From: Fimbriosthenelais zetlandica
Lineage: Eukaryota
Direction: 5' to 3'
DNA: 64,000 bases
Assembly (NCBI GenBank): GCA_977030845.1
Contig: OZ365110.1
Coordinates: 32,302,001-32,366,000, forward strand
Below, one piece after another: positions 11,794 through 61,784 of this stretch (position 1 is the first letter of the stretch; every line of letters begins with the position of its first letter). A program made the position numbers and the translations under genes. The notes under the pieces are model-generated. The model made no database searches and was not told the origin of the DNA. It was given only the letters and a program-made list of their open reading frames with translations.

Positions 11794-13315
11794 AAAGAGA
11801 CTCAATCTGAATTACGAGAGGAGAAAGTAGAGAGGAGACAGGGAGACAGACAGAGGAGAGAGACAGTCAGACAGAATGAGGAGAGAGAATTCCGAGATAC
11901 AATTCAACGAAGGACAATAGAACTCATCCTTCCTTTTCACTTAAAAAAGAGAAGGGAGGAGCACAATAAGAGTATATAGATGACCTGTCGGATCCAGCAT
12001 CCTGACCTTTCCCATCTCTGGGAATCTATCCCCGGTGTGTTTCTCCACCGATCGCTCTGCCCGGAGTCCATGATTTCCCTGGCTAGCTCTCACCGCCTCC
12101 CCAATAATGAAGTGCTCCACTGAGACCTAACATTCACCGGTTCCCATAAGAAACTCGTTCACTCGACATTTCCCGATGCTAATAGAGGCCTACCTTGGTG
12201 TCAGATAATTGCCCATCGGAGTATTGCTTAATGACTTCAGGGATTAGGTATCAGGGCTCTTACATCCCGGCATTTTATACTTCTCAAATGTCTTTTTCTT
12301 GTAAAGTAAACATGTACTGCGACAATTGATGACATTTTTGAAACATTGGGTGATGTTCGAGTAAATTTGAGTCAAAATTGAAGGAGCTAGGGGGGGGGGG
12401 CCCTTATTTAAGTAACACCAATTAGCAGCTTAATTACAGAATTAATTCCCATTAAAATATATAGATTTTGGTCTTAAGAATAGGCATGACCGGTATAATT
12501 ATATTCTTTGGAACAGTCGGAAATAAACTAATCCAAGACGCGTAAGGGCCTAGCTGATTCAGAACAACCATTATAGCAATGCTAAGTCGATGCGAAATGT
12601 TTACGCTGAAACAGGCCCCTGTGCGAATCTAAATTACAATTTATGATATGTCTTTAGCATAGTAAAAAGCTAAAATTTATTTTCTATTTACTGGATGACC
12701 CTGTGTAATATATATATACTGGTATCGTTTAGCAAAGAAAACACCTATCAATTCTTTTTTTAAAGCCTAACACCTAAAATGAAGGCCTTTTTTGAATATT
12801 CGATTTCGATTTCTAAAGAAAAACTGCCACAAGCGATCTAAGAGGGATAGTCTATATATATTCACTGCCGGTTTCAGTGCTTTGAATGCATTGAAAGCAA
12901 ATGAAAATTATGCATGTATAAATTTCATCGGCGACAAAGAAAACACTCTTGAGCCATCCTCCTCGCATTGTTGTTTATCACGGAATAAAAATAAGATCAC
13001 AGCAGTGACATTATGAAGATGAAAGAGTAAGGAAGGGGTCCACACCTAACCATCAAGAGATAATAGTTTCCCTTCTGAAAGAAAATATCTTCAGCCTATA
13101 TAAACTTCACTGCACCTGCTGAAATATTTTGCCTGAAATTGAGCATTCACTCTCATATATATAAGGTAAATGAGGGATATCCTAATTGTTACCTAATTGT
13201 TCCCTTTGAGTAAATGATCGAATTTGATGTATGGCATGTGTAATACGACGATTTTATTATGCTTAAATTGTCCCGTTCTACCTTGCTTAATGGCTACCCC
13301 AGTGAAAGTTATTTT

Positions 13316-25600: not shown

Positions 25601-26013
25601 AAAGTGGAGATGTGTGGGCCTTTATAGCCTACCGGTAGGCCCTACCCGGACTTTCCCCATAGGTGTGGGAATGTGGGATGAAAAGGGGGTGCTCATGCAA
25701 GCATAGACCTATAATATATAGGCCTACTATTACTAAAATTAGGCCTAGGCCTATTTTCTTATTCTTTGACTGGCATAGTCATAGAATAAATAAGAATTAT
25801 TAAAAATATGCATAGGCAGGTAATAGGCTACCGTATAGGCCTAGGCCCTAAGAATATTTCTTGTTTGTCTATTTTTGTTTCACTAACACAAGCCAAATAG
25901 GCCTAACGTCACATCCTACACTCTTGCTCAAGTCAAAAACCAAATTTCGCAGTTGACCCATTGAGCAAAAATTAATATTAAAATATTTATCCTAATTAGG
26001 CTAACTTGATTTT

Positions 26014-26500
26014 CAGTTCAGCTTTTCGCCGCCTGCAGGGAGGGCGATAGCGTCGCTACATTCTCATCCAATTGAAGGCCTCCTGCGCAAAAATATAACA
26101 AGATAGATAGGAAAACTAACCGTATCTCCGGTTCAGATCGATCCCTGTAGCGCCCTCTCACACTTGTTCATCGACGGAAGATTCGGGAACTAAAGATTTT
26201 CAAGATGGCCGCCGTATTTAGGCTATACAGCACAAACCTCAGTTCAGCTTTTCGCCGCCTGCAGGGAGGGCGGTAGCGTCGCTACATTCTCATCCACTTG
26301 AAGGCCTCCTACGCAAAAATATAACAATAAATTAAGGCTATTCCAATCCTGACTTAGGCCTACTCCTATCTCTATAATACTACTGTGATAGGCTATCGGC
26401 AAAATATACTTGTTTTTCACGAGATAGGGCCTAGATCTATAGGAAAACTAACCGTAGCCTATCTCCGGTTCAGATCGATCCCTGTAGCGCCCTCTCTCAC
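26014..26500. promoter_or_regulatory. Tandemly duplicated ~226-bp CpG-rich promoter-like module (left of the transposon)
   Basis: cagttcagcttttcgccgcctgcagggagggcg(a/g)tagcgtcgctacatt at 26014 and 26240, and again at ~41498. The unit contains a YY1-like caagatggccgcc. Confidence 0.6.
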
Positions 26501-29339
26501 TTAAAGCGGCACTGTCATGGCCGAACGGTCGTAGTTCGCGTTCTCTCCGCTTGAGGGCCGCCGCGCGGTGATGCCATCTATCGCCACTTTTTCGATCTTG
26601 GATTTACTTCCGGTATTCCCTAGCAACGCTTTGATGGACCCGCCGGGAAACTTGCAAGTTTTTTTAAGCTCACGGTAAGTGTTTTGCCAGTGTTTTATAT
26701 AATAAGGCAATACAATAATAATAATGTGTAACTGTAAGAATGGAGTTTTGGCTGACAAATGCGGGGGTTTGGGCTTCCACTTCATACTTGGTGGAGTTTG
26801 AGAGATGCTCAATGCAGTCCAGTCGTCTCGGAATGGGGGTTCTGATTTTCTGATTATCAATCACCGATGGTGAATTTTACCACAGACTTTCTAGTTTGTA
26901 ATTTTACTGAGGCCATATTTTTATATTATTGAAATGTTATGAATTTGGGAAATATAACGTTAGTACTCTTTACTAGTATTAATTTTCTGGGAGAGAATAA
27001 TAGTGAACTAGTCTTACTAGACTATTAGTATTCTACTTAGACAGGTTTATATTCGAAGTCTTATCGAAGTCTAATCAAGGATAGACTACTACTCTTACTC
27101 TATTTACAACAGTAACTCTACTATCCTTGGTCTAATTACTAAGACTAAGGCCGACCTTGTGAGCCTTGTGGCTATTCACTGCTCAGCTTTTGTCAAGCAG
27201 TTTATGCACAGACAGGTTTTGACGTTTCCAGACTAACGATCACAGACAGTCTAGATTTTATTTATTTAAAAAAACAACCCTACACACACGACTACTGGCC
27301 ACAACATGACACAACTTCAGTCTTCACGACACAAGGCTCAACTAGACTCGGAAAACATTGTTATTGCCTAGTATTTGTAGGCCTATCATTATTCTAGATC
27401 TAGATCTAAAGCCACTCATTATTTTCTGGCCGTTTTCCCACCCAGTCAGGCTAGTGCTAAGTATCAGCTCTCGAAGAACAACTTCTCGTTGTTTTCATAA
27501 AATTTGATCTCATTCGAAACTTCGATAGATATTTATGATATTGATATGGTGCATTTTTGTTCTTCAGCTATGGGACGCTTAATCGCTTATGTGTGACCCC
27601 GAGGTCAAACGGTAGTTTAGCCTAGTACACATCGTCACCAGGTAAGTGTTCTTTCATATAAAAAAAATCACAGTCACAGATCTAATATTTGAGAATAATT
27701 GGTAATATTTCCTAGATGGATATGTCTAGACTATTTACTCTTGTCTGACACTGGGGAAAGTGCCAAACTTTGATAAGATCTAGATATAGACTCTATATAG
27801 ACTTTTAGTGTTCTCAGATGTCACGGCCATAATGGGAGGGATTATTAAAAAATGATTAGATCTATTCTGAAACAAAGTAAATGCTTGTCGCGTTTTACTG
27901 CTTTTGAAAGACAGGTTTCCAGGCTCCAACACCCGACTACTGGCGTCATCTCTAGGTATATACTGTATATCACTAATAAAATGAAATAATAAGTTATTTT
28001 CTCTGACTGCTGTGTACTGTACATCAAAACCATTAGATCCTACTGAAAGTACTATTTCCTAAACTGTCATACTCAGTACGAGCAGTACTGGTCATACTCC
28101 AAATGCACATTGCCAATCTAGCTCAGAAGTTTGTCTATCCCAATTTCAAAAAAAATTTTTATTTTTTTTTATATCCATTGGACAATAAATTTTATTGGTT
28201 AGATCTAGATCTAATTATAATATATTTCCATCTAGATCTAGGACCATTTTAAAAACATATAAGCTTGACCAGCATAGGTACATATGAGATTGAGATATAT
28301 TATTGTCATTAGAAGATCATAAAAAAAAAATATAAGTTAATCCACATTATCATTTTGACACATGGTGTATTTTTGTTCCCCAGATTTGGACTTGATTTGG
28401 TTCGACCGCCAACGCACACGGCGCACCTAGACACATGGTAAGTGTTAGTTCTCATAGAAAAAAGCTATGTCAGAATAGAAGGGATAAGCTTTTTATTTGT
28501 TGCTGTCACTAGGGTAAGGCGACAAATATTGGTAAAATCCCAAGTTTCTCAGATAACATAGGAGGGAGTGAATTGTTTCCTCTGGCCCTCACCTAATCTT
28601 TACCTTTTGAATGACAAATGTGAACATTTATATACATATATTATTATAATTACATTGTATGTATCCAGGTCCCAGCTGCAGACTACTGGCATCATCCCGA
28701 AATTTATCTACCGACTACTAATGTACCGTAACCATTTTTTTTATTTTTTAGGAATTAATCCACTAATACCTCATCTGCTATCATTATGGCATTTGCTATG
28801 TATATGATTTGGTTTCTAGTAGAATAAGTTTAATTCTTTTTTCCATTCATAATGACACCTTTTTTGACAGTCAAGGCCGTAAAGAAATCGTCAAATGAAC
28901 TTTGGCTATAACAATTTGGCCAATATCTATCACCGATTTATGTTACAATCCTTACCTCTTTTCTAATTCTACAATATTATACATGGAGTCAATACCAATG
29001 AAATATTTTCACGTTGATTTGCAAGCTGTCATTTGAAAGATTTTTTTTTTCGACCAAAGGAACCCATTAGGTCATGTGTTTATGAATATTGTAGTTCTAA
29101 ATTTTTGGAGATTTTTTGGGTGATTAACGAGGAACTTTTTCCTTTGCCTTATTCTGAAACTTCACAGTAAGTGTATGGTACTATTTGTGAAAATCTAAAT
29201 CCAGATTACGTAGACGTGGCTCTTTCAATGGAATTGGTTGCTAATTAATTGTATGCTTTCATTGATTTAATTGATTTTTCGCTCTTTTGAGTGGAGTGAG
29301 AGTGGAGTGATGCATTTGGGGGCGGGAGGGAAGGGAAGG

Positions 29340-29990
29340 GAAGGGAAGGGAGTTTGATTGGAAAGTGGGTTAGGATTATGGTAGGGAAAGGGGAAGGGGG
29401 TTGGATTGGAAAGTGGGTTTGGATTATGGTAGGGAAAGGGGAAGGGGGTTGGATTGGAAAGTGGGTTTGGATTATGGTAGGGAAGGGGGAAAGGGGTTGG
29501 ATTGGAAAGTGGGTTTGGATTATGGTAGGGAAAGGGGAAGGGGGTTGGATTGGGAGGGGGAGGCGAAGTGGTTTGGATTATCATGCAGCGTTTGACATAC
29601 ATGTAAGTTTGTGTCGTAGTGCCCGGAAAATGGAGGGTTCCCTATTGCCTCGTGAACAAGTGTTATGATATGTGGAGGGGAAGGGTTTTGGAATATGGGA
29701 GGGGGGAAAGGGTTTGGATTGTGGAAGGAGGATGGGAAGAGGTTTGGATTGGTTGCAGGAAGCGGGTGGGAATGGAAAGAGTAGGGAGGGGGTGGACTTG
29801 GGGAGTTGGGATGGAATGGGTGAAGGGCGGGAGGAGAATGGTGTAGATTGAATCATATAAGTAGAAAGTAGTCTTTCATTACCAGATTTTGTGTACCTAA
29901 CATTAGACATAGGGCCACATAATAGTCTTTTCTACTTCTATGGATTGAATGGAGGAGTGGGGATGGAATGGGTGAAGGATTCGATTGATT
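29340..29990. repeat. G-rich 48-bp minisatellite (~4.5 copies) and degenerate continuation
   Basis: Unit ggtttggattatggtagggaaaggggaagggggttggattggaaagtg repeated 29354-29560; explains the periodic ORFs at 29267-29668. Confidence 0.9.
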
Positions 29991-29995
29991 GGGGG

Positions 29996-30590
29996 AATCC
30001 CAATACATGTAATAACTCACTGTTCCTTCCAGTTGTTCTAATCACAATAATGACTTACTGTTTCTTCCATTAGTTCTAATCCCAATACATGTATAATAAC
30101 TCACTGTTCCTTCCAGTTGTTCTAATCACAATAATGACTTACTGTTTCTTCCATTAGTTCTAATCCCAATACATGTAATAACTCACTGTTCCTTCCAGTT
30201 GTTCTAATCACAATAATGACTTACTGTTTCTTCCATTAGTTCTAATCCCAATACATGTAATAACTCACTGTTCCTTCCAGTTGTTCTAATCCCAATAATG
30301 ACTCACTGGTCCTTCCAGTTGTTCTAATCCCAATAATGACTCACTGTTTCTTCCAGTTGTTCTAATCCCAATACATATAATGACTCAATGTTTCTTCCAG
30401 TTGTTCTAATCCCAATAATGACTCAATGTTTCTTCCAGTTGTTCTAATCCCAATAATGACTCGCTGTTTCTTCCAGTTGTTCTAATCCCAATACATATAA
30501 TGACTCAATGTTTCTTCCAGTTGTTCTAATCCCAATAATGACTCAATGTTTCTTCCAGTTGTTCTAATCCCAATAATGACTCACTGTGTC
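29996..30590. repeat. 38/44-bp minisatellite with higher-order structure
   Basis: Monomers ttctaatcccaata(catgta)at(g/a)actcactgtt(t/c)cttccagttg, arranged as 3 dimers then 3 trimers. Confidence 0.9.
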
Positions 30591-31630
30591 CCACTGTTAT
30601 TTTTGTTATTTTACAATCCGGAGTTTCTAACCCTAATATCATTTTCCTCGTCAATTAACTCAATGTTTCCTACATTCTAATACAAGAAACACAATGTTAC
30701 ATTTTCAATACATTCATGTATCGTGCCATTTTGGTATGACAGTTGACTCAATGTTTCCTACATTATCATTACAACTGACTCAATGTTTCCTGCATTATCA
30801 TTACAATTGACTCAATTACTCAATTTTCTTCAGCTACACATAATGACTCATTTGCTGTTGTTCTGAAATAGATAATTAAGTAGGTGTACATAGTGTTTCA
30901 GAGATAAAGAGTGCAGTAAAGATACCCATTAGCCCAACCTAAGCTGATACTAACCTAAGCCTCACTGATCTTTGCATGCCACTGTACCAGATGATGTATA
31001 TTGTCTTATGGTAATGATGTAATGTAATGATGATAGGAGATCCTTTTATATGAATCTATGTCTAATCTGGCTGAAATATATCTAGGTTACAAAGTAACGC
31101 TTGTCAGACCAGAATGAGGAAGCGAGAGAGGGAGAGAGAAGGGTACAAAGAGAAGGGCGAGGGCAAAGAGACTGAGCTTGGATATTACATGGGCTTATAA
31201 AGTTAAGGTCAGAGGTCAACAGCCAATGAGGGGAAAGAGGCGGGTCCAGGCCCACAGATGCATGGTAACTGGACCCAAGACATATGACAGAATGATTAAT
31301 GACAGGTAGGGGTGTGTTAGGTATAGGAGAGGGGCGATAGGGACTATTACGTAATAGACATAGGGCCTAGTGTAGGAGCCCTCCAGGTAAAGAGGTCCGC
31401 CTGGTGGCTCTCTGATAGGGGAAGCATAGATATAGAAGGTAGAGAACAAAGGAATATGAAGGATAAAGGATTAATAATCATTATAAAACATTATAAAACA
31501 TCATAAAACATTATAGAATATAATTAAATATTATATTAGAGAGTGTTACGGCTAGGCGTAACACCACCTTAATGTGAAATTACTAGTTACATGTATGGTA
31601 TTCAAATGCAGAAATCGGCCCAACCTGCAG

Positions 31631-34600
31631 CACCCCTAAAGATCAAGAGTCAGCCGCATGTAAAAGGAGATGTAAGTAAATACATAAGGGCAATAAGAAT
31701 GATTCCTTTGTCATTTCGAGTGAAGGTTACTTTCAAATGTTTTAGAAATAAAATGTAATGCATTTTAATGCACGCCTTAATAGACATTTGTGCTATATAC
31801 ACATGGTTTATCTTAATAGTTGAAGGCATTGATATGAGTATGACACCGATCAAACCAGCCAGAGCAGCCGCAAAACGGCTTAGCATGGAGGAGATAAGAG
31901 ACCATCGAGACAGTGTACCGGTATCCCCGATTATACCCTTCATGACACCCAGTGCCAACGAAGGTAAAATTCTTATATACGTAATAAAAATAATTACCAT
32001 ATTTGCCGGAGTATAAACTACACCTGACTATAAACCGCACCCCCTGGCCGCTCAGGTTAAAATCCATATATAACCCGTTGTTTCTATATATAGTAATCCA
32101 TATAAAAAGCGACAATGCATGATATTTTTGAACATGGTCATCTGACTTAATTCCAGAAGTTGTATACTTAACACCAGCCAAAGGGGGCATACCTGACAAG
32201 GACAAGGACTCACCGTTGTCATATTCTCCTCAGTTATATGAGTCAGATGACGAATTGTAAGTAAAAGAAACATTTGTAACTCTCTTCCCCCACCTCCACC
32301 ACCTAACATGTCTGCCTATCTCTCTCACAATTTCCCTCCCTCAACTCCGATCAGGTTTTCAAATTGGACATTTATTGGTTTGTTCCAGTTTACCTGACAT
32401 AACGGATATTGTTTTCAACAATGAAGATGAGGAAGTAGGCCTACACGAACACGAAGAGGGGGATGCAAAACATTTTTGCAAAGTTCAAATGTCAAAGGAG
32501 GAGGCGATCAATGCCAAGAAATCTTTAGTTTTTAATGATTGTCTATTGATTTTATTGAAATGCGCTGTCGGCGAGACGTGCTACAAGTGTCAAACCCCCA
32601 TTAAGTTTAAACCGACGAAGATAGGCACATGCCTCCTTGTGAAGTGGTCGTGCCCTAAGTCGGCGAAGGGCGAGAGCCACAGCAATGGTTGCTGGGCGTC
32701 CCAGCCGTACATCGCAGGGATGTACGCTGGGAACATCCTGACCTCCACTTCACTCATCCTGTCGGGGAATAATTATGCAAAGGTGGCGTTGATGGCAGAC
32801 TTCCTAAATCTGAACTTCCTATCTGAATCAACCCATTACAGGTATGGATCTCAATTGATAACATAATTTATATGGATCTAGATTAGTTCATTAAACTTGC
32901 CTCACGTTTTCATTTCTCAGAATTTTTAAGCATTTATATCATTTGATTTTAGGATACAGTCCAGGTACGCCCAGCCAGCTGTAAATGAGTACTGGGAGAC
33001 TACCCAAGCCCATCTCCTCCAGGACCTCCAAGGTCCCGTTGTACTGGCGGGAGATGGGCGAAATGATTCCCCAGGACATAAGGCCAAATACCTGACGTAT
33101 AGCTTGATGGATGTCGAAACGTCTAAAATATTATCCATGGCCGTGGTGGACTGCAGGGAGACCGGGCTAAACAGTGTTGTTATGGAAAAAGTTGGATTTA
33201 CCCGCGCTATAGCCCATATACAAAGCAAGGTGCAAGTGACTGAAGTCGTCACGGACGCCCACCCACAAATAATGGCTCTGATGAGTAAGTAAGACCTAAA
33301 ATCACTTGATTTGTAGCGCCATGATTCTTGATACCTGAGTGAGTTATCGAGATCATCTCAATCACTTTGGCTGATATAAATTTGACTTATTATTTAGAGA
33401 AAGATGTCAAATACCAGAATATGGTTCACCAGTGTGACGTCTGGCACGCTAGCAAGAACATCACCAAGAAGCTAGTTGCTGTGAGTACAAAGCTCGATGG
33501 AATCAGGACATTTTTGCCCCCCCACCGCCGTTACCACGTTTTGTTTAAATTTTCTTCCTATCTCCTATTATATACTGTTGTTGAAGACACCAGTGTTCCA
33601 GCTTGCTTCTCTTTAACCGTTAGAGGGTTATGTAGCAATCATTAAAATACAGGGGAGGGCATGGAGTTATAAATATTACAATATATAAATCATACATTTT
33701 TATTAGTCATATTCTAAAATTATGTCTTATGAACTTAAGTAAAATCATGTGTGACTCTTATGGAAAGCTAGGTTCATTGATTTCCAGTCAACCCCACTAC
33801 ATATCTGTATTCTTCTCGTAACCTATTTTCAATATGCTGTCAACATTTCACCCCAAAGCAGAATCATTTACTACCCATAAATTTCTCCTATTAAAGGCTG
33901 GAAAGGAACGTGGAATGGGAGACCTGACGGCGTGGATCCCATCCATAAAAAACCATCTCTGGTACTGCGCACGGACATGTGGCGGGGATTCAGACAAACT
34001 CAGGGTGAGCCAATACAAAATATAATAATGGTATAACAATATCAACAGAAAATATAACAGCATATTCCAGCTCTAGTGAATTTCTTCTATTATTCGGTTC
34101 CCAAGGTTTGTGATTGATTATATGGCCCCTTTCTATTCCTGTACATGGATTGAAATTTCAGAGAAATTGGGCAACTTGTCTGTCTCACGTCTGCAACAAA
34201 CACACGTGGCTGGACTTTACTGGGCGCACCAATGGGAGGTGCAACCATCCCATTCCCCTTCCCCCCGATGAACAGCAGAAGCCGTGGTTGGAGCCGGGTT
34301 CCAAAGTACATAAAAGGTTGACAGAGATTCTGCTCGACAAGCAACTATTAAAGAAAATGGAATATCTGAGGAACTTCAGGTAAATTGAGAAACTGAAGCC
34401 ATTAACACAGTACAAAGTAATAAACAAAGGAATCTATCAGGGGAGGGTTTCATAACAATGTCTTAGTGTATGAGAAAGGCCCCAGGTCGTACATATTAAT
34501 TAACAATGACTTTGAATGTTCAGTAAAGGCATCAACATTCCTTGCTCTTGTTCTTCAGACACACTGGACAACTAGAGCTTTTTCACAGCCATCTCCTGAT

Positions 34601-35490
34601 GTATTGCCCAAAGAGGCTCGCCTTCAAGTAAGTTAAACAGAAAAATGAAATACATGCATTGACATTCAGTAGACTGATAATAAATCAGAGTCTTTGCGGA
34701 ACACATACTTAATTTGCTGAATTCCAAATGTTTCAGATATCCGAATTATCTGATGCGGAACCAATTAGCAGCCCTTGATTTCAACCACCATGTTGATAGG
34801 CAGAATGCCACCGACAAAGAGGGAGAATTAAGGTGAGGATTACTATAGTTACTAATGGACATTATATTCAATGGCAAGTTACATCTTGTAGATTCGCTTA
34901 TTCTTGAAGTTTAATATCAAAGACATACACATAAAGCACATGTAAAAACTTTTAAGAACAGATTTATTTACATCAAAATTTAATTCGCCATTTTATCCAT
35001 AATGATAATGCAAATGTGGTTCAATGTACATTTCTAATTATATAGTACAGTAAGTTACATCGTTTTTCCTGAGTTATATAAATTCGTTTCACAGTTACTC
35101 TTTACATAAGGTACATGATCTGTATTCATCTCTACATGTACTTATTTATTGGTACACTTCTCTTACAATACATAATTGTACTGTTTGAAACCATGTTAAT
35201 CAGGTATTACTGTCCTGTTTCCCATTAGGTACAGATGCTACTACAGTAAGGCGACAAAGAACTGGAGCGCGGTGCCTGCCAAGGAGGCTAAGTCATACAC
35301 GTACATCAAGGAGCTCATACAATGTGTCTATAGCAAGAGGGAGGAGGAGCATGGAGAAGTCCCCATTGCCACGCCACATGGACTACATGACAACGACCCA
35401 TCCCGACTGCAACCCACCATTGCAGCAGTCCCCAAACCCCCCAAAGCTGTACTGGTTGAACGCCACCAATCCCGATTCCTTAACAATTAA
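31631..35490 (+). CDS. Kolobok DDE transposase (at least 634 aa; 5' exons unresolved)
   Basis: Exons 31631-31671, 31820-31963, 32157-32256, 32389-32841, 32953-33284, 33398-33480, 33897-34004, 34162-34379, 34559-34627, 34737-34832, 35229-35490. All are GT-AG, phase-consistent and stop-free. Motifs: GDGRNDSPGH (D at 33053), VVTDAH (D at 33254), HQCDVWH, NHLWYC, HTGQLELFH (E at 34575), LAALDFNHH, C-terminal HQSRF. Confidence 0.9.
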
Positions 35491-35642
35491 AGTACCCTCC
35501 CTACCTCCGAAGCTGGTTGATAGGCCCAGCACCAATCCCGATTCCTTAACAATTAAAGTACCCTCCCTACCTCCCAAGCTGGTTGATAGGCCCAGCACCA
35601 ATCCCGATTCCTTAACAATTAAAGTACCCTCCCTCCCTCCCA
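35464..35642 (+). repeat. 66-bp tandem triplication spanning the transposase stop codon
   Basis: caccaatcccgattccttaacaattaaagtaccctccc... starts at 35464, 35530 and 35596. Confidence 0.9.
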
Positions 35643-36344
35643 CCGAGATAAATGTAAATAATTAATGTAAATAATATGTAAATAATATCCCCATGCCTCA
35701 CTCGACTCGTGATGAACCAGTTTTAACACGGACAATTTCACGCATATCTCCAGTCAAGTGGGGAGGGGGGTGGTGAAGTTAACAAATTGTCTTTAATTTT
35801 ATAGTAGATCTAGTTCAGTTCAGAAATAGTTTCCTCATAAAAATCATTACAATTAAAATTTTATATTGGTACATTTTTCTTTGGTATCAAAGAAAGAGTT
35901 TTACTTGTTTACATGTGTATAGTTTAAATTATAAGAAATAATTGTCAGAAGCTGTATTCTGGACTTGGGAAAGGGGGACGGGTAGAATAAGTCATCACAT
36001 ATGTGTGAGTGAGTGAGCGCATGTCAGAGAGATTGATTGAATGCCTGCATGACTGAGATTAAACTAGTATAAATTTAAAAAAAAGATATCAAAACTTCTC
36101 TTGTTTTGACTTGATCATACTACATTGTATGTGTACTGAACTGGGTTGACATGCGAGTTGGAAAGGGAACTGGAATTATAATACTCAGTTTTCCTCAGCG
36201 AATGTATATTCGGAATAGTGACAAAAGTATGACCAGGCAGGATCAGCCAGGGCTAAATGTATAATACCCAACCCTTGCTCATGGTATACATGGTATACAT
36301 AACAATTTGCCCCCTGTTGTACATGAATGCCTTTTAGATATACA

Positions 36345-36500
36345 GGCTAACTGACATATGCCATGTGCATGAAGCATGATACCTCAGTGAGGCAGCACTA
36401 TAAAAGAGCATAGGGCTCACTGTCACAAGTAGGCACGACCATGATTATGATATAACTAAAACATTGTTGAAAGTGACCGTAAACCCCATACAATACAATC
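36345..36500 (+). mobile_element. 3' half of a MESC-like SINE inside the transposon
   Basis: tgatacctcagtgaggcagcacta...ctcactgtcacaagtaggcac...ttgttgaaagtgaccgtaaacccca(tacaa)n matches the reverse complement of the 60674-60990 copy. Confidence 0.7.
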
Positions 36501-37179
36501 ACTTGTAGCGCTCAATAGTCCTATGCGACTTTAGACTCATTTACTGAAAATACATCACATATGTTTGGGCAGACACAACAGGGTAGTGAATAGGCTTATA
36601 GACATAGCAGCTGGCATGGCGTTAAATCACCATTCATTCAACATGGTAGTTATGTAAGTTAGTAGCTGTGAAGCTTGCACAATTGGTCTTATATTCCATA
36701 AAGTAACTCATCTAAATGACCCAGTCTCCTGAGAATATTAGTTAACTATTATTTTCATACATTAATTATTTTAGAATCAGGATATAACAGTATAGCATTG
36801 TGTTAGGGCCGTCATAATTTTTTCTTCACTCAAAACCTTTTAGCTAATCGTTTTTCATCTCGAAAGGAAAAAACATATTTAAAACATTACTTGCCATATT
36901 TAAGATGCTATCCGGGAATACAATTATATTACTAGTTCTAACATACATAACCTATACTGTACATATAAGTAATGCATAAAGGAATGACGGTCGTAATATT
37001 ACACAATTATCTGTATCACTATCAACTTGCTAAATTGTTTTTAATAAATCTTACAATGTTTCTAATCACAACGTACTGTTTCATGGAAATGATTCCCCTA
37101 AGGCTCAATATAAATGTGTGTTATGTTTCCAGGAGACTGTCTCATGTGGTCTCTTACTTTGTGAGCGAAATTATTCCGC

Positions 37180-38948
37180 TCACAAAGTAAGACGATCAGG
37201 ACGTTTAAAACCTGTATATACACCATCAACAGATGGATAGTGCTGTCTGACAAGACAGACAACACAGCTTGGAATGACTACCCTGTTGTGTCTCCCCAAA
37301 TGACCAAACCGCCATAAAACAAACTGGCGGTAGGCCATGTGACGGAGAGTGTCATTACTATCTGGACTGTCATTAGTAACGAAAACTTCGTTGTGGTTAA
37401 TGACAGCCAGATGTAGGCACTCTCGGGATAGAACCAGGTGATTGATAGGGCCAGCACTGGTGACAGAGATGCAGGGACCTGGTCGCATCCTGTGGCGGCA
37501 GCATAGTTCTTCGTCTGGGGTGGGCATGGGGCGGCACCTGCCACAATTACACCATACTGGTGCCTCCTCCTCCTGGGGTGGGCGGGGGGTCAGGACATGT
37601 GCCATGAGGTCGGGGTACATGGCGACGGTTCTCTCGATGATGCTAATAAGGGAGTCACGTGACATGAGCCTTAGCTGGAAAAGAGGGAAATCAAATGTCT
37701 GCTTAAGTAATAGCAGACTTTCTCCACATTTGGTACAAAAGCTTCTGAAACGAAAATATGTAAAACACTAGCGTATCAAAGATGCAAGTTGTCCATTCAA
37801 TCAGAATGCCCTTAATTAATAATAGGCCTATATTCATGAATGAAAATCTTTAGATCTGTTTATAATTCTTACTTCGATATTTGGTGGACAGTTGCCCGAC
37901 TCCACACGCCTTTCTCTTGGCCCATCTTCTGCCATAGGGATATCTTGACTATCCTGAGGAGGAAAAACCAGTTAAATATCTGGGTTACGCCTACCACTAT
38001 GAAATAGTTAGCCAGAGTACTAGGGCGATTTAAAAAACAAATTTTTCACATACACATAGAAGCCACAATATTTGTCAGAGCACATGTGATATTACATACC
38101 TGTACAATAAAGGACGCCTCGCTCTGGTCTTCAGCAGCATGCTGCAGACTGGTGTTTGCCTCACTATCGACGGTGAACGGCGGGTCGTCCCCAAAGGCCA
38201 CTATGAGTCCCTGCCGTGAAATAATTAGACTTAAGAGTTACTGCTGTTCATAATTTATGATATGTAGGCTTTTGGAATTGAGAAAAGAGATAAGGCCACA
38301 TTTTTTAATTGGTTGGTTCTCGAACAAAATAGGTCTAAATATTTTTGGGGCGGGCGGGAAAAAAAACAATTTTTTTTTATTCACAGTAGTCAGCTTTCAA
38401 AAAGAAAAAAGTCGGCGGGGGGAAATAATTATTGTTTAATATAAATGTATGACTTTTTTTTTAAATCTTCATTAAAAGTATATATAAACTGCTAAAAACC
38501 ATTGATCTGTAGGTCTATGATATAAACATTTTTAAACTTCTGAGGTAGGAAGGTAAAAAAAAAAAAATTTTCGTTTTGCCTGGATCTTACGTCGGCGGAT
38601 CTGCTAATGCAAAAAAAAATATTTTGTCTATTTTTTAAAAATTTGTGTAGGCGGGTCCGCGAACCAAACAATAAAAAAAATGTGGCCTAATGAAGGATTT
38701 TGGAAAGAAATACATGTGGAAAAGTGGCACACCTCTTCCTCGCTCTCTTCCCCTGAGCAGTCCTCTTCTTCCCAATCCCTGTTCCTCCCTCTTCCGAGTC
38801 TATTGGAGCATTTCATTTTCCCCGTCCCACACTGACACATCGACGAGCAAAAAGTTCCATTTGCCAGGCAAGGGCAACCCCCTCTCTTATTTGCGCCACG
38901 GTTACACAGATTTTTGCAGTGACATATCGTTGGGTCACTTGACGCCAT
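37180..38948 (-). CDS. Kolobok accessory protein (300 aa): N-terminal 9-Cys CXC domain, acidic linker, C-terminal P2X7-ballast-like (ZCD/'CCHH') domain
   Basis: Exons 38948-38733, 38210-38100, 37953-37873, 37674-37180, all phase 0, total 903 nt. N-terminus CHCKNLC..CPC......C...CQC......CSN. C-terminus WCNCGRC..EELCCR..PGPCI..LVLSR..RHMAYRQFVLWRFG..IPSC..YTGFK. Confidence 0.88.
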
Positions 38949-41423
38949 CACTAGTTTTTCTGAAAGCAAGAAAAAACACTGGTCATCACCAAACATGATA
39001 CTTATCATATTTAACTTCATAAGTTGAGCAGAGCATGCACATTATAGGATGAATCCCCTAGTTATTTCTAACACTAGGCCTAAATGATTACCTCTATTAT
39101 ACAATAGGCCTACTTATCGAGTTTTACTCTGAGATAATAATACATGTAAATACTATATATATTTATAACATAGGTGAGAACACAATTATATTGGATATCT
39201 CACTATACCTACATATTCCTCTGAATTTTACACTCGCATGGGAAGCTAGGGCCCTGAGTGGCATAGGCCTCTATATAGCCCTCATCCTTACCACAGGACC
39301 CAGTAATTTTTATGTTTTTAAAACCAACGGGAGCTTAAACTCAGAATTGAGTTTTCTATCCTGTGTCCTTTATCAATTCTATCAATAACAGAATATTATT
39401 TTGGCCACTTTCCGATCAGAATATCAAATGTGAGCGAGTTTTTGTTTGTCAGATATTATTTGTCAGAAATGGAATATTTTATTTATTTGCACCCTAATAT
39501 GAGGATAAAATATTTATTTTTATCATCCCTTGTGTATTTTTTTTTTTTCACCTATACTCCCAAGGAAATGATTTATTAAAAAAAAAACACTACTTAGCTA
39601 ACAATCATGGAAAACCTAACCAAGGCTAAAACTTGGTTAGAAAACACATCATAATCAAAGATTGTGAGAATTAACCACAACATTGCCATATATAGAGGGT
39701 ACCACCCGATTTTTCTCTTCGTTTTCTTCTTGAAACCCCATACATGTTTATGACTATTCACTACCAGTAGGCTTAATTGTGGGAGTCATAAGCATAGATA
39801 TATTGACAAGGAAATGCTATGGGCCTATATACCTACAGGCCTTCGACTTAGCCTCTAGGTCGAGGCCAACATATTATTTTAATGGGCACAGGCCTAGGCC
39901 TACCGGTAGGCCTATCGTAAATCATATTAGGCCTATAGGCTAAAATCTACTTATCAAGCTTATCAAGACTATAGAACCTACCAATAAAATGTATAGCTAG
40001 CCTCTGATTTTGGGATAAGCTCGATTATTAACTTAGGCCTATAGGCTAGGCCTACCTATATTTTTTTTAATTTTATTAATAGGCCAGCATTGTGCATATT
40101 TATTTTTAAGATCTTTTTGAAATATTTTACACCGGCCTACTATTTAGGGGCTAAGATCTAGACCCTATTATTTCTGGAAAATATATTTTTTTTAAATTGG
40201 CTGACACATTTTCTCTCATACGAGGTGTTTAAAAATTGAAATAATTATAGGCCTGGATAAAAATAAATAGTGGAAATTCTTATGATAAAAAGGTTCAAAA
40301 CGTGAATAGTTCGTCACTACCAAATAATAGTTGTCCCAGAACGTGGCTGCGGGGCTACAACGGGTTACAAGAGGCGGGGGCTTGTTTCAAAGTAAATCAG
40401 GTCTGGCTCAGTCCCTGTCCTCGCCCAAATTATCTGACAGTGATATCATTTATTTAATTTCTTTTGGGAGTCAAGACTGACATTTTATTAGACGAGGAAA
40501 ATATTGGAGAGATTGGGGAACTTTTTATCCGTCATTAGATATTGTATTTTTTAGTTAATTTCAAATTTATTGACCACCGTAAATTATTACATCGCCAGAA
40601 ACCCCCCACGTCGTGTGCGTCAGCACCAAAGTCATAGAACTAGTTGATCAAGTGGAATCGGTTTACAAGGGAAACAAGTGGATTTATATACGTTTCCGTA
40701 TATAGATATAAAGAAAAAACTGCAATCAGTGCAGGTAGGCATATATTACGTATGAATATTCAAATATAAATCGTTGAATATGTCTATAGATCTAACTATT
40801 CCTAGACCTATGTTTAGGTTCTGTCTCTGCCTGACAAAAGCAACGGACATGACACATGACCTAGATAGGGCAGGCTAGATCATCATCATAGATGAAGTCA
40901 TCTCATGTTTAGAATAATAGGCCTACATGCCTAGCCCAAGCCCTAATCCAAGATAAGATAGGAAAAATAAATTGACAATATTTTCTGGAAACAACGGGCA
41001 TGTTTTGGCCTTTGTCTCTCACTCTGACTGCGCCTTGCAGGTGCTCGTGCATAGGTCTTTTTGGGTGGAAAACTGAATGGTGTTCAGTACAATAAATATT
41101 TTCTCCCAAGAAAAATAATCACAAAATTGAATTCAGTCTGACATCGGCATTGAGATCTAACGTTAGTTTTCTAAAGGAATTTACTTACCACTGTACTTGT
41201 TGGGTTGAACGGGTCCTACGGGGTAGCGCTAGTAGTGGTCAGTGACACTGTCCATCGGAAAACGTCAAACGCGGGAGCTGGCACCGGGTGACGTCCGGCG
41301 GTAACCTAGGTCACGACGGAAGTCACGTGACCGTCGGCTCGCTTAAGTGGGAACATAGACCGTCAAGCGGTCTATGGTGGGAAGCTTAACGCGCTGCGGC
41401 GATCGGTGACAGTGCCGCTTTAA

Positions 41424-41750
41424 GTACTTAAGCCTTGTTCATCGACGGAAGATTCGGAAACTAAAGATTTTCAAGATGGCCGCCGTGCACAAACCTCAGT
41501 TCAGCTTTTCGCCGCCTACAGGGAGGGCGGTAGCGTCGCTACATTCGCACGACAGCACAAGTAGGCCTACGCCACCACCGGGGGAACTAGTCAAAAACGG
41601 TGAGAGTTGTAACCTGCCAGTGGTTACAACGAGCCAAGATGGCCGACAAAAACATAGTTTCTTCACCGAAACAAAAATAAAGACGTTTAGAGGCCCTACC
41701 GTACTGTTCATCTGGGTAAAAATCACAAGTTTTCATTTCAAGATCAAGTA
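41424..41750 (+). promoter_or_regulatory. FAM204A promoter / non-coding first exon (continuation of the interrupted module)
   Basis: CpG-rich; YY1-like caagatggccgcc (~41472) and caagatggccgac (~41636). Candidate donors at 41600 (acg|gtgaga) and 41751 (gta|gtaagt); acceptor at 42143 before the ATG exon. Confidence 0.55.
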
Positions 41751-46654: not shown

Positions 46655-49600
46655 TTAGTCATCCAGAACCAGAATTTCCATGTCTTCTTGCTTCTTGTTA
46701 GAGTAGGACCGGCGGATGATGTCCACAGCTTCAATGTGAGACACATTGATAAAGCTTTCTCCGTCGATGGACAATACTTTCATTCCAGGCTGAAATGGTA
46801 AAGAAATATAGTTACATGTATATTCATACATTACTTCAGATATATTGGCTGAAATCTCTAAATTTGGCAACCAAATTATGCCTGAACATCCACCTTTCTA
46901 ACCTCAAATCATTTTTTATTAGAAAGTATTTTAAACATATTCAAGATATTTCCAAAAGGAAAAGGCTTAATTCAAAAGGTTCAAACGACTTATCCGAGTT
47001 TGCTGGACATTTTTCCCTGCACCCTACCAAATTCCAACTATCTGGTTCATGTAAATTACTTATCTAAACAAAAATGAGCAAAATCTAAAATTTGAATTAA
47101 AAATTTGTATTAAACAACCTTGAGTGTGCCCTCGTCAGCAGCAGCGCCTCCTGGAAACACTTGTTTAATTCTCACGTCAGGCTGTGAACGGCTGTCACAG
47201 CCACCAGAAATACTGATCCCTACAAAACATGGGGGTTTGTGTGTCAGATTAAAATTTGACAAATGAAAAAAAACACACCAGAAAACAGTCCATGAATTTC
47301 AAAAAGCCAATGAGCCGACGCTGAGATGGATTTTTTTTAATTCAGTGTCAGATCCACTGGGTCGATCTTGTCATCCTGTCAGAAGCCAATGGGTATATGC
47401 CAGGCTGAGTTATGCAAAACCAACCAGCCTGTCGGATGCCCAGTGCCATATGCCAGGCAAAGCTATGCAAGACCAACCAGTCTGGCAGATGCAAATGGGC
47501 AAAGACAGGCTGAGTTATGCAAATCAACGAGCCCGTCAGATGCCAATGGGCAAATGCCAGGTAAAGTTATGCAAGACCAACCAGCCTGCAGATGCCAATG
47601 GGCAAATGACAGGCTGAGTTATGCAAATCAACCAGCCTGTCAGATACAAATTGGCAATTCACAGGCTGAATTATGCAAGACCCACCAGTTTGTCAGATAC
47701 AAATTGGCAATTCACAGGCTGAATTATGCAAGACCAACCAGCCTGTCAAAAGGCAGAATTATGAAGAAGACTGACCCATCTGTCAGATGTCAATAGGCAA
47801 TTGACAGTTTGACCTATGGCTTAGATGAAATCAAATAAGTTAACCTAACAAAATAATATATTAAATGCTTACCTAAAGAAGCCCTTGTTTTCCCCAGCAC
47901 GACCAATGTGGGCTCCTGGACAAATACATCATCTGAATGTTCAACAGCCAGCAGATTCTCCATAGACCGTCGCTGCCTGTACAAAACATCCCCTTTACAT
48001 TCTGCTTCAGTCATAAACGCAGCAACCTCCCGACTCGATACACTGGTGGGGCTATTATTGGACATATTGGCATTCAACCTACCCCCATATCCCGAATCTG
48101 AATTCTGAGTTTGATTGGTAGGTTGGGGACTATTAGAAGAGCTGCTCCCTTCCTGCTCTTTACTGCTCAGGGACCTGCTCCCCCAACCAGGAGGGAAAAG
48201 CTCATTGGGTGACATATAAGTATCCAAGCTCAATTTAGGTCGTTCCACCGACTTTCTTCGACTACGAAGGGTATCTCGCAGTGAGTTCACTTGCGGAAGA
48301 CTTTCTGAAACTTTCTTGGTGAAAGTCCCACCAGAGCTTGCAGGTGATGGTGACTCTACAATATTATTCTCATAAAGTTCATTGCGTTGGTTTTCAACTG
48401 TTCTTGACTCTGTTTCATTCATTGAACCACTGAAGTAATCCAAGGATGGACAGGGCGACTGGGAACCCTTCGACATTGTCTCTACCTTTGGGCTTATTCT
48501 CAACAAACCCACACTGGAGTTGTTAATCACTTCTTGAGTCACATCTTCAGTGACCCATTCACTCCAGGCCCCCTCCTCCCCCTCCTCTTCCCCGGGGGGA
48601 GGTGGGTCCAGGGGAGGAGGGGGAGGGATAAAGACAGGAGGGTTCCTAGTCGGGCTGTTTAAATCCTCACTGCAGTTAGAGTGGACATCGTAGGAGCCAT
48701 ACCTGGTACTGGCTATAGTTGACATTGAAGCCACTGATCGGGGTGAATGCTGCGACTCTGGGTAATCATCATTATAATCATCGAGTTCATCTAATAGCTC
48801 CAGAGCAGCCACTAGTGAATCACTCTGAATCCCAACTACTAAATTATCATCAGAATGAATATGAACGATTTCCTCCTCCGATTTGGGAGTTTTACTCAGT
48901 AAAACAACCTCCTCGTGAACAGAGCTCCTGGGGTCTTCATCAGCCACGTCATAGACAGGTTCCGTATCATAGATCTGCCCAGTTCCATCATTACCTGGAG
49001 TTCCATCATTCGCTTGGATGGTTCCATCATTCGTGGAACCATATAAGCTACCGTTTGAATGGTGGGATGCATAGTTTTTCATGTGAGTCTTCGACTCCAT
49101 TCTTTGAGATTCAGACTCAAGTATCGGAGTCCTAGACTCAAGTATTGCAGTACTTGCATACTCCTGTACTGGACTGGAGGTCCTTATAACATGATGATTC
49201 TGAGGGGCCACCATCATCATCCCGCCTCCCACCTCCCTACTGGGACTACTGAGGGTGGATGAACTACTAATCGACCTAGGTGATCTCAGATCACCATTCC
49301 TCAATGCCTTGTACACTTTAGAATTGCTTTTTGGTCGGTGGATTTCCAGCACATGTTGGGCCGTGGGAGAACTACTAGTGACTATCTCTTTCATTCTTCG
49401 TTGGTCGGCGGAGAAGGACAGTTCATCGGTAATGGACTGGCGTTTCTCTCTAGCCAGACGGGCTAATTTTTCTCGGTTGTCTCTCTCGTCTCTCTCTACA
49501 GGAGACTTTCCTGTGTTATGGACTGGAGGATTTCTACCACCTGGAAGCGAAACAATTATATCATTCCCAAATTTGTGTCCTTCAATTTCTGAAATAGTTT

Positions 49601-52600
49601 TCATTTTAACTACCGGTATTGTGGATCCTTGAGAACAACCTCTTGAGCAAGGTGATCATCTCACTATGCGACCAGGAAATGGTCAGATATATTTGTTTCA
49701 ATAAAACATAATTCTGTACGCGGGTTTCGCGCTAACCGCTCACTAATTTGCCATTGCCGAATGATAAATTAATTTAGCGATTGTAAACAATATTTCGCGA
49801 AAAATTTGGCGAATAAGGGTTCATTTTTAGTGATGACAAAATTCCAATTCAAAGCCGAGATACTGGCGCCCAAAGTTGGTAGCCTAATATGGTTTCGAAG
49901 CGATGAATGCCATTCCATTTCCATGAATAGTAATTCATACAGTGTTTGGCGAGTCAAACATATTTTGGTCGAAAATTTGGCGAAAGAAATTACCGAATTG
50001 ACATTATCAAATTAACTATATCCTAATGTACTTATATGGCTTGCATATATGTGGAGGGCCACCTAATGTACATGTTGTCTATGAGCCAAGTGTTATTAAA
50101 TCCTCACCACTCAACACTTTCACAAATCCCATCTCATGCTCCTATTGCACCAATACGCTGTTCATCCAACTTGTTAAATTATAATGCATTATTTTGTTTC
50201 ATTTGTCACTAAAGATTTTAACCTTTAAAACACTGACAAAACACTGTTTTGTACAGTACATGTGGAAGACTGGCCACCAGCCAGGTGGAAAAAACCCTTA
50301 ATCTTAAATTTCATGCAAATTTCTTAGAAGCTAACCAACAATTAAATAAAATGTCACAAACCTCTTTTAGAGTTGAGAATATTTGCTCCCGAGTCTCGTG
50401 ATTGAGCTTGGAGGAGGTCCTCTACGCTCTTTGTGAAGTGATCGTTCAGTTCCTCGTACGTGTTTCCTTCATGTTTGTTCACCATGGAATCGAACATTGC
50501 TACATCACCAGGCCTAATGAGCCGCCTAAAAGGTCATTAAAAGAGAATTAACTCATTTTTTCTTTTTCAGTTACTCCAGTTTCCAATTTAAATCGTATAA
50601 TAATTTATAAACAAATAATCAAATAACATCTTTTGGAGTCTAAAAATACAGGACAGATTTGTAAAGCTGCAGACAGGAAAAAGAAGACAATATATAACAA
50701 TATTACAGAATAGAAATACCCAAAAGGTAGGAAGTGTAGAATGACAGAAAATAGCCATTAATTGCAGGTTTGTTTTAATCATACTATGAATATTACGTAG
50801 AATCAGCACAAATGACTCTGCCATTACGAATAGAAAGCACAGAATAATTAGGACAAAAGTGTGGAAAGTGATATTATAAAATTAATTATCTTACCGTATT
50901 TCAGTGAATAAAGCCCTCTTCTCTGTTGTATCTATTATGGCTTGCAGAGGTTTCATGAAGCCATCTAGGCTGCCTCCATTCTCATACTGAAATTAACATA
51001 CATTCAATCAATCAATCAATCAATCAAACAAGAGGGGGTAGTTTGAAAAAAATGATATTACACAGAATTGGCTCAAAAGATCCGTAATTTCAACCGTTGT
51101 TTCCGAATTCTCCGATTTACCCACATAGTGGAACCACGCATAAAGATCTATTTTTTAAAAGTGTTGTTGTTAATTTTGAGTTAATTAATAGAGATCATTT
51201 ACCCGTTTGATATGTCTTGTGACGGCAGTCACCTCGTCCTCCAGTAGCAGCCTCCGGGCATGTTCCTCCAGCATGTCAGCTGATCCGGTCTGGTGACTAG
51301 CTCCGTNNNNNNNNNNNNNNNNNNNNNNNNNNNNNNNNNNNNNNNNNNNNNNNNNNNNNNNNNNNNNNNNNNNNNNNNNNNNNNNNNNNNNNNNNNNNNN
51401 NNNNNNNNNNNNNNNNNNNNNNNNNNNNNNNNNNNNNNNNNNNNNNNNNNNNNNNNNNTGTCAGCTGCTACGGCTAAATTCATATAATTAATCGAACAAT
51501 TGATATTGAAACATTAAGATTACCTGAGATCCAACGCCGCGTACAAACTTGGCCGATTTAGGCATATCCTCTACATTTAACTCTATGGAATCTGTAACAT
51601 TTAATGAAATGAAAGCTATAGGATTAAATAACAAGAATGCAACTCATAGAAGCTATGATTTCCAATGAGTATTTTTCAGGCGCTAAAATAAAAGTTTTCA
51701 AAAACATAATTAACTTTTGGTCCTGATTCTCAATTGACCCTACGTTAATTCCATGAAGAATCAGATCCAAAGACAAAGTAAATTAGGTAGCTGCGCAATT
51801 GCAAATAGCCCTAATGTTAGGGGTGCCTACAGAGAATATCATTGCATTGCAGGTATATGGGAGGTATAGAAGGTCAAGATATCTGTAGGATGGGATATTT
51901 TAAAAGTAAAGAATACAGGATATTGTATGGACAACTGATTTTGTGATTAAAGAATAGGGAAATGTTGAGTTGCTAAAAGCTTCCTACCTGAAGCAGAGGC
52001 TGTGTTCCCAACCTGAGTGAAACCAAGATTGCTGAGAGGCTTGCGTGTCTTGTTCTTGGATGCTAAAGGCACTGCATTTGATAGGGGGAAAATTGGTAGG
52101 GATTTCAAAAAGGGTTTAAAAATATACTAAATGAAATCAGTACTGATCAAACATGTTCTGAAGTATTTAGCGAGAATATATATCAAAATCTGAAATTATA
52201 TTTTACTGGTATTCCTCGGGTAATAAGAAAACCTTGTATTTTAAAAAATCTATTTGTAAAAAAAAAATCTATTTAACTATACTATACTGAATGAAATAAT
52301 ATTTAAAACATGCAAACACATTGATAAATAATAAAACACATAATGGACAAACGGAATTATTTCGAAAGCCATAATAATATGAACATAAACATGTGCATTG
52401 AAATACATGTACATCTCTGGACGGACTAAATATCTCAAAAAGTACATGTGTAGATATAATGTGTTGCAAAAATCTACATACAAAAAAAATAAATAAACGT
52501 TTCCGTAAAAAAAATCTGGAATCCTACTCTAAATTCCTACGGTAAAGGACAAACCTGGCCTAAGATCCAAGGGCAAAGTGAATCGAACTAAATAAGAATA

Positions 52601-61493: not shown

Positions 61494-61784
61494 GGTTGTG
61501 TATGACGTAATGTGCCAAAATTAGATTGAAGGGTGAGGTTTGATTTTAGGGGTGGTAAGTACAAGGGTGCATGGTGGGTTAGTCAGACTATCGGTAGTGG
61601 ACTTTATGACCAGGTTGATCTGGGTTTGGATGATGGTGGCTGTCATCCTCCTCTACAAACTGCATTCTCATCCATGGGTGATCACATCGTTAGAAAATCT
61701 GAAAAATGGAGGAAAAATGTTGTTGACACTACTTGAACTGTTCAGAAGTTCTTGTTGATTGGCAACTATATATATGTCTATTTT

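Follow-up and report, generated by a model that had tools for sequence, protein, structure and literature searches.

The 64,000-nucleotide stretch of Fimbriosthenelais zetlandica contig OZ365110.1 analyzed here (positions 32,302,001 to 32,366,000; hereafter, the window) contains a 14,915-bp element, located at 26505–41419 when the flanking TTAA copies are left out of the count. The element carries 2 converging genes, one for a transposase on the plus strand and one for an accessory protein, KolX, on the minus strand. Its ends, target site, and gene content indicate that it is very probably a full-length Kolobok DNA transposon belonging to the KolX-carrying Kol0 lineage, inserted at a TTAA.

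Each end consists of a 13-nt terminal inverted repeat (TIR) bordered by TTAA, and the 2 TIR arms are complementary at 13/13 nt. The left junction reads CTCTCAC TTAA AGCGGCACTGTCA, and the right junction reads TGACAGTGCCGCT TTAA GTAC. The repeat finder returned a perfect inverted pair of 19 nt (26499–26517/41407–41425), comprising the 13-nt TIR, TTAA, and 2 flanking bases; the pair extends beyond the TIR and TTAA because the target is itself a palindrome, ACTTAAGT. When the window was searched with the 17-mer formed by TTAA and the TIR, allowing up to 3 mismatches, just 2 sites were recovered, both at the element ends, with 0.08 expected by chance. The termini, AG...CT, follow the 5′-RR...YY-3′ pattern that, along with TTAA duplications, defines Kolobok elements (Kojima & Bao 2022, PMC9587614). 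The perfect TIRs with TTAA on both sides (26501–26504 and 41420–41423) reported in an earlier, sequence-only reading of this stretch are thus confirmed.

The insertion site lies inside a tandem array (26013–26502 and 41434–41549) of a CpG-rich unit of approximately 226 bp. The copies of this unit are 87–97% identical, differ by small indels (e.g., TAGCC and ATTTAGGCTATACA), and the unit carries a YY1-like motif, AAGATGGCCGCC; the target is a tandemly repeated, CpG-rich, promoter-like stretch. An uninterrupted paralogous copy of the site is located 340 bp upstream, with 26101–26165 matching the left flank (26433–26502; 88%) and 26163–26292 matching the right flank (41434–41549; 87%). The homology between the flanks and the uninterrupted paralogue is broken by the element, which identifies it as an insertion. 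To the right of the element (41420–41433; compare with 26160–26170), the sequence reads TTAAGTACTTAAGCC. Here, TTAAGTACTTAA is a perfect 12-nt palindrome (TTAA+GTAC+TTAA) and the sole TTAA-N4-TTAA palindrome within the window; it may be a scar left by an older TTAA-targeting element whose ends were GT...AC, unlike the AG...CT ends of the present one.

The transposase gene was modeled by enumerating AG/GT sites around the ends of stop-free pieces and checking the frame at each junction by translating the joined exons. Just 2 splice combinations keep the frame open, differing in a single acceptor (32157 versus 32160). The resulting model has 10 coding exons (31834–35490) with canonical GT-AG boundaries throughout and a single open frame of 616 codons, or 615 with the alternative acceptor. 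With the putative noncoding first exon added, this agrees with the 11-exon transposase described from sequence alone, including its D-D-E motifs (GDGRNDSPGH, CDVWH, and HTGQLELFH) and its freedom from stops and frameshifts. A short open reading frame (ORF; MPS...FP) in the left-end exon has zero cysteines and reaches a stop if spliced to the 31820 acceptor; the left-end exon is therefore read as 5′ untranslated region (UTR). All splice junctions of the gene, including the link from the 26674 donor to the acceptor at approximately 31820, are predicted, the coding ones from GT-AG borders, continuity of the frame, and 7 intron positions in common with a relative on an ENA contig (see below). Minisatellites occupy the putative first intron at 29327–29553 (48-bp unit), 29996–30587 (38/82-bp unit), and 30744–30816. 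At the opposite end of the gene, a 66-bp tandem repeat (35464–35642; 2.7 copies, 98% matches) starts within the last 27 nt (9 codons) of the coding sequence (CDS), so that duplicates of the stop codon and of the 3′UTR start occur downstream.

KolX is read on the minus strand from an ATG at 38948 to a stop at 37182–37180, with all coding exons in phase 0 and approximately 300 codons free of stops and frameshifts. Three or 4 coding exons follow a noncoding first exon that ends at 41189, giving 4 or 5 exons in total, and both forms are open. Accordingly, the open frame of the 4-exon accessory gene proposed earlier stands, whereas its exon number may be 4 or 5, an 81-nt exon being optional. No ATG in the right-end exon stays open up to its donor, and this exon is therefore read as 5′UTR; the link between KolX exons 1 and 2 and the splice junctions are likewise predicted. 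The last exon matches the Pfam family P2RX7_C (PF20478; E 2.6e-37) and aligns to residues 467–594 of solved P2X7 structures (E 1e-23). The aligned region, known as the ballast domain, includes the cysteine run WCNCGRC..CC..C..C..C, and the blocks WCNCGRCRPMPTPDEELCC and AYRQFVLW can be set against WCxCxxC, PMP, xCCxx, and AYRxFxxW in the published KolX figure (PMC9587614). The N-terminal module is distinguished by 9 cysteines, which are invariant across 3 species, represented by the window element and by relatives from Diadema and from a contig in ENA (see below). Searches of Pfam and PDB with this module, both singly and as a 3-sequence profile, yielded only Pfam TCR at E 1.4 and no PDB match. 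Its identity as a CXC domain was considered and is not established, the likeness to the tesmin/TSO1 CXC being one of pattern only, and the passages of PMC9587614 consulted make no mention of a nine-cysteine KolX module. Approximately 600 nt past the KolX stop, a plus-strand stretch (36564–36587) is identical at 23/24 nt to the sense strand of the ballast exon (37277–37300, encoding LGRHNRVV); it lies in the opposite orientation, shows no surrounding similarity, and may be a rearrangement relic or a chance match.

The CpG-rich ends with strong inward donors noted in the sequence-only reading were also recovered. The observed/expected CpG ratio is 1.39 and 1.43 in the 2 terminal 250-bp bins and mostly 0.2–0.9 inside the element, with one GTAAGT donor following 26674 (plus strand) and another following 41189 (minus strand); the flanks beyond the element are CpG-rich too (0.9–1.1). 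Both ends contain, read inward, the 8-mer CCGCTTGA, 43 nt from the left tip (26547–26554) and 50 nt from the right tip (41363–41370). AAGCGG, the 6-nt sequence across the TTAA–TIR junction, is contained in this 8-mer as its reverse complement. The ETS-type core ACTTCCG is also read inward at both ends, at approximately 100 nt on the left (26600–26612) and approximately 92 nt on the right (~41320–41328), and the right end additionally holds CACGTG and a cAMP response element (CRE)-like TGACGTCC. The shared subterminal motifs, CCGCTTGA and ACTTCCG, are candidate transposase-binding and promoter elements, and the 2 additional right-end motifs are candidates of this kind as well. Rfam and tRNA scans of the element gave no match. 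An inverted repeat of approximately 140 bp (71% identical) links the intergenic region of the element (36358–36494) with distant host DNA (60667–60807) and is probably a small dispersed repeat.

Table 1. Features of the Kolobok element and its insertion site (window coordinates). TSS, transcription start site.
Feature	Position	Strand	Evidence or remark
Paralogous uninterrupted copy of the insertion site, 340 bp upstream	26101-26292	+	Flank alignment
Left TTAA target-site duplication	26501-26504	.	Sequence, repeat finder
Left TIR AGCGGCACTGTCA, 5′-AG terminus	26505-26517	+	Inverted-repeat finder, 17-mer search
CpG-rich left end, putative promoter and noncoding transposase exon 1	26505-26674	+	Donor CACG/GTAAGT (26674/26675); TSS and splicing putative
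Putative first intron, 5.1 kb	26675-31819	+	Putative acceptor near 31820
Transposase coding exon 1, ATG at 31834	31834-31963	+	
Transposase coding exon 2	32157-32256	+	
Transposase coding exon 3: Cys/His cluster C..C...C...H, then W-SQP/GN/SG block ahead of the catalytic core	32389-32841	+	
Transposase coding exon 4: first catalytic D (GDGRNDSPGH), TDAH block	32953-33284	+	
Transposase coding exon 5: second catalytic D (HQCDVWH)	33398-33480	+	
Transposase coding exon 6: NHLWYC block	33897-34004	+	
Transposase coding exon 7: H2CH finger (SHVCNKH ... GRCNH)	34162-34379	+	PMC6004289
Transposase coding exon 8: catalytic E (HTGQLELFHS)	34559-34627	+	
Transposase coding exon 9	34737-34832	+	
Transposase coding exon 10, stop TAA 35488-35490	35229-35490	+	Homologues share end point
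KolX last coding exon, P2X7-type cytoplasmic ballast domain, stop 37182-37180	37180-37674	-	PF20478
KolX optional extra exon, 81 nt, phase 0	37873-37953	-	Inferred; not conserved in relatives
KolX linker exon, 111 nt, phase 0	38100-38210	-	Inferred
KolX first coding exon, ATG 38948, nine-cysteine module	38733-38959	-	CXC-like by pattern only
CpG-rich right end, putative promoter and noncoding KolX exon 1	41189-41419	-	Donor AGTG/GTAAGT after 41189; TSS and splicing putative
Right TIR	41407-41419	-	Inverted-repeat finder, 17-mer search
Right TTAA target-site duplication	41420-41423	.	Sequence, repeat finder

To place the transposase, database searches were run exon by exon rather than with the joined spliced protein. 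A full HMMER search for exon 32389–32841, with the stop-free piece 32261–32863 as the query, retrieved 540 relatives. Full-length relatives (640–707 aa) from Diadema antillarum, D. setosum, Lingula, Holothuria, Saccoglossus, and Xenopus tropicalis are collinear with coding exons 3–10 (32389–35490), and their C-termini coincide with the predicted stop. The window exon peptides were then added to an alignment of 40 relatives, in which they keep all strongly conserved family columns, namely C..C...C...H; W-SQP, GN, and SG; GDG..DSPG; TD.H; HQ.D.WH..K; NH.W; H....H ... C.H; and HTG.LE.FH. The H, C, and H columns of the H2CH finger are at least 90% conserved in 39 relatives. Compared by eye, the window protein has a Kolobok-type DDD/E core that matches Kolobok_1_XT1p and Kolobok_1_BF1p block by block. 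In the published core alignment (PMC9587614, supplementary file 3), the row Kolobok_1_XT1p shows the common blocks VVLAGDGxxDSPGHxAKY, DVWH, NHLWWC, H..NKH, C.H, and HTGxLExFHS, its own letters being AVVLAGDGQFDSPG/HSAKYCTYTMMD, TDRH, QFDVWH, ITNHL/WWCSQTC, YHIANK/H, C.H, and HTGDLENFHS, and the counterparts in the window transposase are PVVLAGDGRNDSPGHKAKYLTYSLMD, TDAH, QCDVWH, IKNHLWYCARTC, SHVCNKH, CNH, and HTGQLELFHS. Among the 10 stop-free pieces scanned against Pfam, KolX included, P2RX7_C was the sole match, and no transposase piece was assigned to a family. Some of the relatives give weak Pfam matches to Mutator, MULE, and ISL3 transposases, and more distant relatives carry a THAP domain.

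The TTAA duplication, the AG...CT termini, the Kolobok-type DDE core with its H2CH finger, and the KolX second gene together uphold the Kolobok identity that had been suggested from the sequence alone. The Kol0 group, or its type Kolobok-1_XT, is reportedly also credited to Kapitonov & Jurka. The original Kol0 group, with Kolobok-1_XT as the type, combines a transposase with KolX, which has the P2X7 ballast fold, and we assign the window element to Kol0 because its second gene is KolX, the hallmark of that group (PMC9587614, 2022). An element of the piggyBac type would also create a TTAA duplication and sometimes carries a KolX-like gene, but the termini here are AG...CT rather than CCC...GGG, Pfam assigns no exon to the piggyBac transposase family, and the core motifs follow Kolobok-1_XT block by block. 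Moreover, the window KolX keeps the cysteine run, whereas the piggyBac proteins described in PMC9587614 lack most of the 7 conserved cysteines, and a piggyBac origin therefore has next to no probability.

Two related elements provide a context for the Kol0 copy in the window. In Diadema antillarum, 2 copies of a 15.8-kb element (loci L003, 7685–23520, and L004, 7715–23490; proteins XP_071484497 and XP_071480932) are 99.0% identical. In both copies the left boundary of this identity falls precisely at TTAA AGGGAGCGT and the right boundary at ACGCTCCCT TTAA, defining a 9-nt TIR, AGGGAGCGT. One copy sits in an intron of a PDZ gene and the other in an intron of a laminin gene, and KolX lies approximately 6 kb downstream of the transposase on the opposite strand, its nine-cysteine and ballast exons both recognizable. 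This is a bona fide mobile Kolobok of what looks like a recently active family, and the presence of 2 copies with 99.0% identity indicates that the branch holds real, recently mobile Kolobok elements of approximately 15 kb. The second relative, on an ENA contig (L001 and L002 merged, 29.6 kb), has the same exons, at 37–95% identity per exon, and its KolX converges on the transposase, the 2 genes alone spanning about 17 kb. Its L001 part has AG/GT at the same 7 core intron positions, with introns 3 to 20 times longer. Given these common positions, the intron-rich structure is inherited within the sub-branch and is not peculiar to the window copy. No TIRs were found in the 29.6 kb of this relative, the ends of which probably lie outside the sequence covered. 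L001 also contains a 505-bp inverted duplication (10523–11027/12641–13144; 99.4% identity) around exon 11861–12190, resembling a foldback-type insertion or a rearrangement across introns.

In light of these relatives, the description of the window element as very large and unusually intron- and repeat-rich in the sequence-only reading was overstated. Ten full-length X. tropicalis XKol elements, all with AG termini, measure 6.7–13.9 kb (PMC6004289), the Diadema element reaches 15.8 kb, and the genes of the ENA relative cover more than 17 kb. Members of the THAP-less, intron-rich sub-branch are typically approximately 15 kb or larger, so that the size of the window copy is ordinary. The labels autonomous and candidate mobile element from the sequence-only reading stand as proposals, given among other things that no recognized N-terminal DNA-binding domain (THAP) is present.

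Several observations weigh against the reading of this element as a full-length Kol0 copy. The paralogous empty site is not letter-perfect: it reads CACTT followed by GTTCATCG, without TTAA, and the 15-nt difference falls right at the junction. Removal of the element and one TTAA from the interrupted site leaves CACTTAAGTACTTAAGCCTTGTTCATCG, with 15 extra bases relative to the paralogue, including the palindrome TTAAGTACTTAA. The perfect TIR is a weak clue to age, because it is only 13 nt long, and no record of an identical or nearly identical protein was found. Usual Kolobok motifs are DDE, H2CH, and THAP (Hikosaka et al. 2018, PMC6004289), of which THAP, usual but not universal, was absent from every exon piece in Pfam scans, and searches of the window with the THAP domains of 3 relatives found nothing. 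Searches with N-terminal regions of 230 residues against 26.5–32.4 kb returned only noise, with no recognized N-terminal DNA-binding domain, and the N-terminal '...RW...LLD' motif of several relatives is absent (regular expression W...LLD, no match). The nearest full-length relatives likewise lack THAP.

On another reading, the copy, although structurally intact, is immobile and thus a young corpse rather than an autonomous element, having been silenced, crippled by missense changes, or deprived of an N-terminal DNA-binding domain. This is a serious possibility, if not quite a probable one. Consistent with it are the lack of THAP or any other recognized DNA-binding domain, the nonconserved N-terminal 120 residues, and the left-end MPS...FP ORF, which offers no cysteines and no open path through the 31820 acceptor. 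No second copy was seen, and the 161-aa KolX ORF had no exact match on record in public assemblies. On the other hand, neither the transposase (616 codons) nor KolX (~300) contains a stop or frameshift, every residue conserved in the family is retained, and the THAP-less Diadema relative exists in 2 near-identical copies (99%), which implies that the absence of THAP is no bar to mobility in this sub-lineage.

Host-maintained Kolobok genes provide a further alternative, in which the window would contain a domesticated or fossil Kolobok-derived gene pair kept at a fixed locus. Precedents exist, as Kolobok transposases have been domesticated many times in Xenopus (PMC6004289) and KolX is the source of the P2X7 tail and probably of nanor (PMC9587614), and a single copy is visible in the window. 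However, domesticated copies usually lack their ends and often the DDE residues, whereas the present copy retains perfect TIRs, an undamaged TTAA duplication, and all three DDE residues, and its empty site is represented by a paralogue. Nor does it share host sequence with the Diadema or ENA loci. The occurrence of a PDZ gene both at a Diadema copy and at 53–61 kb in the window raised the possibility of an orthologous fixed insertion, which was rejected because neither L003 nor the ENA locus matches any host segment of the window; nothing thus points to such an insertion, and we regard domestication as very improbable.

For a Kol0 transposon, the likeliest mode of movement, judged from the sequence, would be DDE cut-and-paste at TTAA. 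The 616-residue transposase would fold into an RNase-H-like core with an inserted H2CH finger, recognize the AG-ended 13-nt TIRs and perhaps the subterminal CCGCTTGA copies, excise the element, and paste it into another TTAA, which would be duplicated. Each CpG-rich end may act as an inward promoter followed by a short noncoding exon and a long first intron, the left-end promoter serving the transposase and the right-end promoter serving KolX. KolX itself would combine its nine-cysteine module with a P2X7-type ballast domain that binds zinc, with an accessory or regulatory role in transposition being the likeliest. On this model, the element would be transcribed from its ends, its transposase would be catalytically competent, and the copy might still be mobile. 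The available structural model, which is that of the 38%-identical Diadema relative and not of the window transposase, has a mean predicted local distance difference test (pLDDT) score of 76, exceeding 90 across most of residues 170–630, with the N-terminal 170 residues disordered (AlphaFold). Its Foldseek neighbors are ISCth4 of the IS256 family (E 8e-6), the Drosophila P-element (E 7e-4), and Hermes (E ~5e-3), in agreement with the literature, where the C/DxxH signature places Kolobok with hAT, P, and MuDR (PMC9587614).

A more far-reaching scenario, which we consider unlikely, is that the THAP-less, intron-rich Kol0 branch is alive here, with regulated splicing (e.g., germline-restricted, as in the P-element) gating transposition and KolX as a required partner. 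The 7 core introns and 2 inward terminal promoters would then make transposition dependent on splicing, and KolX would bring to the transpososome a CXC-like, nine-cysteine Zn-cluster DNA-binding module together with a zinc/guanine-nucleotide ballast. If true, Kolobok would gain its first system open to experiment, and the domain from which the P2X7 tail arose would be assigned a function. In the searchable literature, no cell-based assay of excision or transposition came to light for any Kolobok element, nor did an assigned function for KolX, the ancestor of the cytoplasmic tail of the P2X7 receptor; KolX is mentioned there in a single paper. With both genes open and both ends perfect, the window copy is a reasonable starting construct for a Kolobok activity assay with and without KolX.

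Outside the element, the window contains a 476-codon open stretch on the plus strand (15838–17265) that resembles a long interspersed nuclear element (LINE) reverse transcriptase by eye, and a 613-codon serine-rich open exon on the minus strand (47817–49655). The PDZ gene mentioned above is a minus-strand host gene (53434–61520) with PDZ-like and harmonin/whirlin-like N-terminal stretches, recognized by eye, whose closest relatives carry PF21219.

Among known systems, the Diadema element is similar to that of the window in its TTAA target, AG-ended TIR, converging transposase and KolX genes, nine-cysteine and ballast KolX, THAP-less transposase, and size. The Diadema transposase has 674 aa and shares approximately 38–40% amino acid identity with the window protein, its catalytic core (residues 139–674) is encoded by one exon, whereas the window core is split by 7 introns, its TIR, AGGGAGCGT, differs from the window TIR, and 2 copies were seen in Diadema. 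The XKol elements of Xenopus share the AG termini, TTAA, and the DDE core with the H2CH finger, and the TIR of subfamily A1, AGCGATTCTGACATGG, resembles AGCGGCACTGTCATGG of the window; their transposases, however, carry THAP (C2CH, PWF, AVPTIF) and are encoded by single-ORF CDSs of ~2.1–2.6 kb (PMC6004289), in contrast to the 10 coding exons and absence of THAP in the window. Similarly, the Kol0 type Kolobok-1_XT has the same TTAA target, RR...YY termini, core blocks, H2CH finger, and KolX ballast, and the window element departs from the Kol0 description in the absence of THAP, the 7 introns in the core, and, as far as the consulted passages of PMC9587614 show, the conserved nine-cysteine KolX module. 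With the piggyBac superfamily the likeness extends to the TTAA target duplication, whereas terminal nucleotides and transposase family differ, so that the window element is not a member. The window copy is thus one more intact representative of a described lineage, similar intact copies being known from Xenopus and seen in Diadema, and is a new, well-preserved, full-length, and probably young Kol0 member of a THAP-less, intron-rich sub-branch.

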